From assembly GCF_964204645.1 (NCBI RefSeq), contig NC_134030.1, forward strand, positions 6,304,778 to 6,368,777: 64,000 nucleotides of DNA. Direction: 5' to 3'. Position numbers and translations under genes: made by a program. Positions 47,101-50,100 of this stretch are shown piece after piece. Every line of letters begins with the position of its first letter. Positions within the stretch are counted from its first letter, which is position 1. The stretch is from Tubulanus polymorphus (lineage: Eukaryota; Animalia; Nemertea). A model generated the notes under the pieces. That model was not told where the DNA came from, made no database searches, and was given only the letters and a program-made list of their open reading frames with translations.

Positions 47101-50100
47101 GCCTGCGCAGAATAAACGCGCGTGATAGTTAATCAGCTCGATATAGAACCGTACACTGGTGACCGAGAAAAAAATAGAGTACGTCTGAATAGCGGGTTCT
47201 ATAGTTAATTGGATCAGGGAAGTGTGATGAGATGGAATACGGACGCTTTTAATTGCCGGATGTAGGCTATTCAATTCAGCCCGTACATCAAAGGTTACCG
47301 CAACAGCAGTAAGCTACGCTTATCGAGTGTGTGTTACCAGCTGAACACCAGTCAACATCAACTTTGATTCGGTCGCAGAACAACCCGCAATAGTTTTAGC
47401 CCGATAAATGTTCTGCGATCGATACTACGCATGCGCACTGCAGTTCATTGAACCACGTGGAAGTGGCTGTGTATAAACATATTTTTCTTTAGAAAATCGG
47501 TTGAAATTCAACAATTTCTCGTAAAATTTGTCCAAAAAGGTATGTATTTTTATTCTTCTATATCTCCGAAACCCGGAATCGGAACATTAAGTGTTTATAT
47601 TGTGATTAAAGTCTGTTTTTATGTGTTAAACATATGTTTTTGCCAGTTCGTTCCGATTCCGGGTTTAGCGTTATTTGGGCATTGAAGATGTCAAATATTT
47701 CGGCCCAGACTCGCGCAGCTTTCGTTTCTGACGTCATGTTGCTATGTTACGACACAGACATATACATGAAGTATGATCTTTAAAATGTGTATTTACTACA
47801 TAATAATGTTACTTAATAACGCTTACATTAGGCCTACAAATTATTGTCCCCCATATAAACCAAGTTGCCTAAATAGCATCAGCAATCTCATTTAATTAAC
47901 CTTTTCTTGTTTTTAGTCATGGATCTTTGTCGATTGTGTGGAAAAAATGCGAAACCTCCGGATCGTCGTCCTATCGATAAAAATAATTTCAAAAGCCATG
48001 TGAAGGAGTTGTTCAACATTGATTTTGATGATGATACTGAACAGTACCCGATATATATCTGTAATATGTGTCGTGTCAAATTACAAAAATGGCGTAAGAA
48101 CAAAAACGTTAAAAAAACTGTCCCTGTGACTATCACAACATGAAACTTTGCCCACATTTTATCCAAATCTTTCGCAGTGCTTATGTGAATGGCGGAACAT
48201 AATGTATCTTGAATTTTTGTAAACCACTGGTTAATTCCAAGTCTGGACGGCGACGTATTTGTAGTCAAAGTTTTATCGATCGATTTTCCATTATGTACTG
48301 CTGCCATTCCATTTGAACTGAATTTAAATACTCGATGGTTAATCACTTCAGTCATAGCCTTTTCCAAATATATAGTGTTCCTGCGAAAATAATAATAATG
48401 ATTATTATTTTAACATGTACTTATCTGGATTTTTTATATTATGTTTATATATTATTTTCTGTATTCGTTTATTATTTTATAACCTAAAAGGATTGTATTG
48501 ATTATAAAAATAAATGTAAAAAATACCTGTATGTGTGTTTTCTCGTGTTCAGATCGCAGTCTCTGGTCAGCTGAGCCTGAGAAGTACCTATATGAAAAAG
48601 AAAAGGAAAGAATAAAGTGCCTGCAATTAGGTGGAAACTATTCCGATATTACATTGATTCAAAAGGAATAACACTCACTAGAATCGGCCGAATTAGTTGA
48701 TCCTGATCCAGAGGATTCCCGTAATATTTCCGTATCGATCTGAACCAATTCGTCACTATCAAAGAATAGTTCGTCAAAATCGTCATCATTTATAATTTCG
48801 TTGACAACCGTTGCCATTTTAATACAGCGGAAAGAACCGATATCACGATTGATAAAACACTATATCCGTCTGAAGCGATGTAGAGAGAATCGCACAATGA
48901 TAACGAAAAAGTCCAAAAATGTTAGTAGTTTATTCAACGTTTCGTCTATGTCCTAATAGTCATCTTCAGAAATAATGAATACTACAGAAATTATGAGAGA
49001 TATATACAATCCAGAGACAAAGAGACTAATTCAAGTAATCAGAGATGATACAAACTAAAGGAAAATTAACGTAGAAACAGTTACACGCTAAAACAGATTA
49101 AAGAGAAGCAGTTAAGAGACAGACTAGGGGGCACTTAAATTTAAGACAATTGTGAATACAAGTTGATCGACTAAAATTGATGAGGGGAAATCAGGTGTTG
49201 AGTTTAACCAGTTTACAGAGGAATTTTTATATAAGTTTATTATGGGATGAAAAACCGATATTCGGAAACAACTGAATTATTACGGAGATTCCCGATCTCG
49301 CTGGTTATCGCTTATCGGCGCGTTACGTAACAAAGCGCTCGCCGACGAACCGTTATCGGCTTTAGGGCAATTACAACGCACATTCGACAAGAGCTGCACA
49401 ATAGCGTCCGTATTCCATCTCATCACACTTCCCTGATTGGATCGAGATGTCGATTAAGAGATTGGATTGGAAAAAATGGCCTGGCAATATGCCGTGGTGA
49501 AGAAGTCCGATTTAGTCGTTGGGGTTTTCGTAAATAGATTATAGAACTAAAGTGAACATTGCAGGCGTCGAGATCGGGGACACCCGTTTACGTGACTAAC
49601 TTAATTGTAAGTTCGGCACCGACCACCCCGGGCATTCTATCTGATCAAATCAGCTATTCAAAGCGATCCTCTAATCAAGGTTCTCAAGTATGGCGCTGTA
49701 CGACCATTACCAGCGGCGAAAACAAGGCAATCTGCTTAATTTGATTTCCTAGTGCAACAAATAGGAAACAAACGGTACAATCATTTTAATTTACGCATCT
49801 GACACTGTCGTGTAGGCCACGCCGTGTCGGAAATTGTGTTAGACGCAACTGCAAATGAGTTATTTACCCAAATTAAGTCGATTCCGTACCATCGAGAGCC
49901 GTTCAAGAAATTGGCTGGTACTCACAAAGAAAATGCTCCCTCGATTATCTTGTTTACAAGAGTAGCGGAAAAGCTTCTTGGCTTTGGTGGCCTGATTGGT
50001 GGAGGCTGGTTTCCAATTTAGTGAAGGATGACCGCTGTGAGTAAATAGCCCCGGGGATGAAGCGATCCTCACCGCCGGTATATATTTGCAAATACGGCTC

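Follow-up and report, generated by a model that had tools for sequence, protein, structure and literature searches.

The transposases of the Drosophila P element and THAP9 carry a THAP domain, a helix-turn-helix (HTH) motif, an RNase H fold with a GTP-binding insertion, catalytic D-D-E motifs, and a C-terminal domain (CTD). Their elements have CA..TG ends, terminal inverted repeats (TIRs) of about 30 bp, an 8-bp target-site duplication (TSD), a preference for palindromic targets, and many internally deleted copies. With the exception of the THAP domain and the TSD length, all these features are shared by the family of a 2,221-bp element found in the nemertean Tubulanus polymorphus, at positions 47215-49435 of a 64,000-nucleotide stretch of DNA (hereafter the window; assembly GCF_964204645.1, contig NC_134030.1, positions 6,304,778 to 6,368,777). 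Unlike in P and THAP9, the CTD of this family is encoded by a separate gene on the opposite strand and holds a long N-terminal extension, the THAP domain gives way to a zinc finger of the NZD/ZAD type, and the TSD is 7 bp instead of 8 bp. Galileo and 1360, with single-gene transposases, also belong to the P superfamily. Both produce a 7-bp TSD, like the window element (PMC3698922). Since they do so, this length is not diagnostic; their transposases, unlike those of the window family, are of the THAP type, and the TIRs of Galileo are very long. GTP dependence and a donor cut staggered by 17 nt are further hallmarks of the P superfamily.

The other systems to be considered are those holding the zinc module of RAG1. 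The Chapa domain has been described as present in no other known transposon (Kapitonov & Koonin 2015, PMC4411706), and Chapaev as the only lineage that consistently retains the domain (Hong et al. 2026, 10.64898/2026.01.24.700457); both papers restrict it to Chapaev and RAG1-like proteins. The same module, the RAG1 N-terminal zinc domain (NZD), is found here on a P core and not on a Transib or Chapaev core, with no RING match and, in the window family, with only its C4 finger. The ProtoRAG and RAG1L-RAG2L systems share with the present one the two convergent genes inside one TIR element, the NZD on the catalytic subunit, and the acidic stretch and PHD finger of some partner genes. In contrast to ProtoRAG, here the superfamily, the ends, and the TSD are different, and the partner, which has no relation to RAG2, is a piece of the transposase itself. 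The likeness is a parallel in layout, not common descent.

The window element is very probably a non-autonomous internal deletion of a two-gene split P transposon, moved in trans by its parent. Its superfamily, the split, the homology of the second gene to the CTD, the 7-bp TSD, recent mobility, and a single clade in which the NZD replaces THAP are established by sequence and structure comparisons. Literature searches, with Repbase, Dfam, and most subscription papers outside their reach, returned no description of P elements that are split or that bear the NZD; the families may already be catalogued without the split having been noted. A P clade with the NZD exactly at the usual place of THAP offers a direct test of NZD function and shows that the domain moved between unrelated transposases. 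A naturally split transposase also separates the catalytic from the target-contacting part, making the role of the CTD in P and THAP9 testable, and represents an independent case for the origin of two-gene recombinases.

Three long copies with the same TIR are present in the genome: L032:404-6313 and L033:402-6311 (5,910 bp each), and L031 (5,511 bp). The parent lies at G000:C8:4047801-4053710. They were found via the long open frames downstream of the shared N-terminus. Gene 1 of the parent is predicted to have 859 codons in five coding exons separated by GT-AG introns, and encodes a zinc finger, a coiled coil, an HTH, and an RNase H fold with a GTP-binding insertion, with the CTD absent. Database searches were run exon by exon, and exons were joined solely to count frame, stops, and motif positions. 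These searches matched PF12017, PF21787 (E 2e-26), PF21788, and PF21789, and the sole PDB match was the Drosophila P transposase (6p5a_A, E 3.5e-7). The Pfam search of gene 1 found no THAP domain (PF05485), with zf-AD in its place. All three catalytic D-D-E motifs are in place, and the protein stops 70 residues past the catalytic E. Judged from these domains, the parent belongs to the P superfamily and not to RAG or Chapaev. The first-pass annotation of the window had noted that the ends and TSD of the element fit the P superfamily, and it was right on this point.

As observations on the long copies themselves, L032 has no TSD (L032:397-403 compared with 6314-6320), which suggests recombination between copies or a flanking deletion. 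Upstream of gene 2, the long copies have a stretch of about 140 bp in direct duplication (L032:5755-6030), which is single in the 2,221-bp form. A 2-kb stretch with long inverted arms, possibly a foldback element, adjoins one of them (L031:1927-3888). A related split-P copy is interrupted by another kind of element (L034:3118-9899), whose inverted ends are very long and repeated internally and whose frames of 1,097 and 468 aa have no Pfam matches.

The features of the window copy are the following:

47208-47214, no strand: left TSD, 7 bp, same letters as 49436-49442, flanks single-copy in the genome
47215-47247, plus strand: left TIR, 33 bp, starting with CAG
47919-48143, plus strand: gene 1 remnant, the first 72 P transposase codons followed by a stop made by the deletion
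48133-48135, no strand: deletion junction with 3-bp microhomology
48133-48380, minus strand: what remains of gene 2 exon 3, covering residues 1-77 of its 328-aa main stretch, with only the N-terminal helices left
48527-48587, minus strand: predicted gene 2 exon 2, 61 nt, with AG/GT borders and the frame preserved
48679-48817, minus strand: predicted gene 2 exon 1, 139 nt, acidic N-terminus
49403-49435, minus strand: right TIR, 33 bp, ending with CTG
49436-49442, no strand: right TSD, 7 bp, matching 47208-47214

The first-pass annotation had read from this copy perfect 33-bp TIRs, an exact 7-bp TSD, a recent insertion, and the deletion of the catalytic middle, all of which hold at the coordinates given. 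The TIRs are perfect, and no other TSD length tested, from 3 to 11 bp, fits the window element. The TSD length across copies gave the same answer: among 21 distinct copies the 7-bp TSD is exact in 19 and has at most one mismatch in 20, an 8-bp TSD fits none of them, and the sites targeted show a loose palindrome. A single nucleotide separates the window copy from each of two other 2,221-bp copies, and movement is therefore very recent. The 268-Mb genome holds at least 12 copies of the window's deletion form, which are 98-100% identical, and some 25 or more copies of a sister deletion form of 2.15 kb, both counts being lower bounds that rest on 40 scored candidates. The N-terminal peptide of gene 1 is encoded at about 50 places. 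Because both flanks of the window element are single-copy, the genome has no empty-site paralogue of the insertion. The element is a young non-autonomous derivative and, since the 2.2-kb copies hold only the ends and gene stubs, they must move in trans.

The deletion removed 3,607 bp of the parent (L032:1312-4918), and with them the entire catalytic core as well as the CTD-like portion of gene 2. What is left of gene 1 is a 74-aa frame ending with the stop at 48141-48143, which encodes a C4 zinc finger (RAG1-NZD ZFa/ZAD fold) and a basic helix. Introns were predicted from GT-AG borders and frame continuity; the ATG of gene 1 lies directly behind a predicted splice acceptor, and a coding exon may exist upstream of it. 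Gene 2 reads past the junction, antisense, until a stop at about 47888. The two genes had been annotated as convergent, cut, and fused at about 48140. They are indeed convergent and meet at one junction, but no fusion protein results, because they are joined at the DNA level on opposite strands. The left breakpoints of three different deletion forms lie within 60 bp of each other (48135 in the window; L032:1270, 1311, and 1328), just behind the finger-coding stretch. Their clustering may reflect descent from one earlier deletion, or selection for a finger-only peptide or a cis element in the manner of the KP repressor of P. A perfect 17-bp internal inverted repeat is also found upstream of gene 1 (47569-47585/47650-47666), with one arm mismatched in L032.

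Gene 2 of the parent encodes about 399 aa in three predicted exons, and runs from an acidic tip through a helical domain and the P CTD to a basic tail. Searched as a single sequence, it gave no match in Pfam or PDB, nor in the word-index database or the Atlas, and the first-pass annotation had treated it as an accessory gene. A profile of six homologs from the same genome reached 2,230 clusters (E<=0.001), of which the top 150 are all stand-alone proteins of 133-535 aa, the named ones coming from a hemichordate, a lancelet, and echinoderms. The AlphaFold model of gene 2 (pLDDT 90.8) superimposes on the CTD of the Drosophila P transposase (6p5a_B) with Z 12.2 and an rmsd of 2.4 Å over 118/118 residues, the best of 48,161 chains, the second-best match having Z 7.2. 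Foldseek ranked 6p5a_B 18th by E-value, yet gave it by far the highest probability (0.82). The deep gene 2 profile matches 6p5a_B with E 0.041 over two collinear motifs and, with E 1e-6, the tail fused to a canonical THAP-type transposase, and the partner gene of Mytilus matches PF22824 (THAP9_C). Correspondingly, the tail past the catalytic E measures 61-80 aa in 37 of the 40 gene 1 relatives with an E motif, compared with 284 in a canonical control. These profile and model matches show that gene 2 is homologous to the P transposase CTD, and the supposed accessory gene is the split-off C-terminal part of the enzyme.

In several deuterostome homologs of gene 2 (P0002, P0022, and other long ones) a PHD finger comes after an acidic N-terminus, an arrangement that echoes the acidic hinge and PHD of RAG2. 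In the window's gene 2 the acidic part is present and the PHD absent.

The facing-gene layout is old and widespread. Gene 2 faces gene 1 in about ten divergent families of this genome, with transposases 36-64% identical, and a convergent partner was found in 7/7 foreign loci, from two lancelets, a sea cucumber, a sea star, a sea urchin, a mussel, and a snail. A 7-bp TSD is present wherever the ends were found, namely in three further bounded elements of the genome and in B. floridae, S. purpuratus, and M. trossulus. The single-gene control L052, with a fused CTD, has an 8-bp TSD. Among the lancelet loci, L045 is an example of a naturally intact member.

In the Drosophila structure, the CTD contacts both transposon and target DNA (PMC7776569). 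As this placement allows the CTD to be supplied in trans, and the conserved part of gene 2 corresponds to the CTD motifs and the basic tail, we infer a two-protein enzyme. The two proteins would assemble into a P-type transpososome, where gene 2 would provide the transposon and target contacts, and the zinc domain would do the job of THAP, binding the ends via its basic helix, dimerizing, or both. A single domain exchange with a Chapaev/RAG1L-type protein may have brought in the zinc domain, the window family having presumably lost the second finger later. A broader proposal, which is favored by a narrow measure, is that of an animal-wide P branch with an obligate two-subunit transposase, one clade of which is a third carrier of the full NZD, in two-finger, alternative-ligand, and one-finger states. 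This would be an independent RAG1/RAG2-like plan, with a partner that is sometimes acidic and PHD-bearing.

The NZD has eight ligands, four Cys in ZFa, and H102, H206, C210, and C213 in ZFb (Hong et al. 2026). In the window domain ZFa is complete, its four Cys aligning with C110, C113, C175, and C178 of RAG1, and the ZFb ligands are absent or degenerate. All eight are kept in 8 of 14 clade relatives, together with the three motifs of Kapitonov & Jurka 2005. Four more, of the echinoderm type, have an N-terminal His and Cys together with two C-terminal Cys, a pattern that recalls the type II Chapa scheme. The remaining two hold ZFa only, as in the window, a state also known from some RAG1L proteins (Hong et al. 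2026). Three of the relatives pass the cut-off of PF12560 (RAG1_imp_bd), and 12/17 match it at E<=0.05. The best PDB matches of the relatives' domain profile are RAG1 proteins (NZD 21WB, E 2e-11; RAG1 102-227, E 1.2e-6), with the best ZAD well behind (E 0.003). A word-index search with the zinc domain of one relative returned only itself, and 21wb was not among the fold-search matches, it being uncertain whether those libraries contain it. In a tree of the catalytic region, all domain carriers, the window family included, fall in one clade (SH-aLRT 99). One member of this clade has lost the zinc domain, and the split members that bear THAP fall outside it.

Several observations weigh against the split-transposon reading or its link to RAG1. 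All three long copies are damaged in gene 1: L032 has a stop in exon 4, L033 has lost 1 bp of exon 1, and L031, which additionally lacks part of gene 2, has lost 5 bp of exon 3. The break of L032 is private to this copy, since contigs from other samples of the organism have a different base at the stop. The public runs for the organism are DNA-like, with no intron skipped, and give no RNA evidence for gene 1 or gene 2. A PHD-bearing gene 2 homolog of Ptychodera flava (L044:8001-10313) has no transposase within 8 kb, and may be an orphan, part of an interrupted element, or a domesticated gene. As for the zinc domain, the window's 74-aa peptide alone is recognized as zf-AD (31.9 bits, with a Pfam cut-off of 28), has no PF12560 match of its own, and gives a model whose top six fold matches are ZADs (Z 6.7-4.6). 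The profile of the in-genome families alone reaches the RAG1 NZD only weakly (E 0.015). The tree, moreover, was built quickly and has a long-branch root, so that any order of events read from it is tentative.

The zf-AD score and the ZAD-like fold, along with the missing N-terminal His and second-site ligands, are what would be expected if the transposon were split but the finger of the window family were a generic ZAD, a type of domain that homodimerizes, captured separately and with no special link to RAG1. This is unlikely: the catalytic region belongs to a clade with the complete two-finger NZD on its members, the in-genome profile ranks the RAG1 NZD first and lists no ZAD at E<=10, and the finger is followed by a strongly basic helix, which is a trait of the NZD and not of the ZAD (Hong et al. 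2026). On these three grounds, clade placement, profile ranking, and basic helix, the window is considered to carry the one-finger state of an NZD-type domain. Thus, the RAG1 N-terminus-like domain of the first-pass annotation stands for the relatives and on a P core, while the window domain by itself scores and folds as the ZAD that had been named as the alternative. Gene 2 could also derive from the CTD and act now as a repressor or chromatin-targeting factor, the gene 1 enzyme cutting and pasting alone. The approximately 200 N-terminal residues gained by gene 2, the PHD finger of several deuterostome homologs, and the solitary L044 homolog would agree with such a role. Nonetheless it seems improbable, given that conservation falls on the CTD motifs and basic tail, that gene 1 never keeps a CTD of its own in the split group, and that the Drosophila CTD touches both DNAs (PMC7776569). 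The combination of a RAG1-N-like domain and two convergent genes would fit a Chapaev, ProtoRAG/RAGL, or other RAG1-core transposon, a possibility with almost no weight left, as Pfam and PDB matches mark the parent's core as P-type, the gene 2 fold is a helical CTD and not a kelch propeller, and the ends are CAG with a 7-bp TSD. Elements of the Chapaev, Transib, and RAGL type have CAC ends and a 3-5-bp TSD; neither these, nor a RAG1-type core, nor a RAG2-like partner were found in the window element or its parent, and the parent's sequence rules such transposons out. Members of hATw also have 7-bp TSDs, and hAT was dropped as a candidate after the core proved to be P-type.

Outside the element, inspection of the window by eye shows a region resembling aldehyde dehydrogenase whose GC-rich frames are unusually long (290-2080, minus strand), an AT microsatellite (25122-25604), a run of von Willebrand A-like exons (30737-35627, plus strand), and a single-exon frame resembling a G protein-coupled receptor (40762-41826, minus strand).
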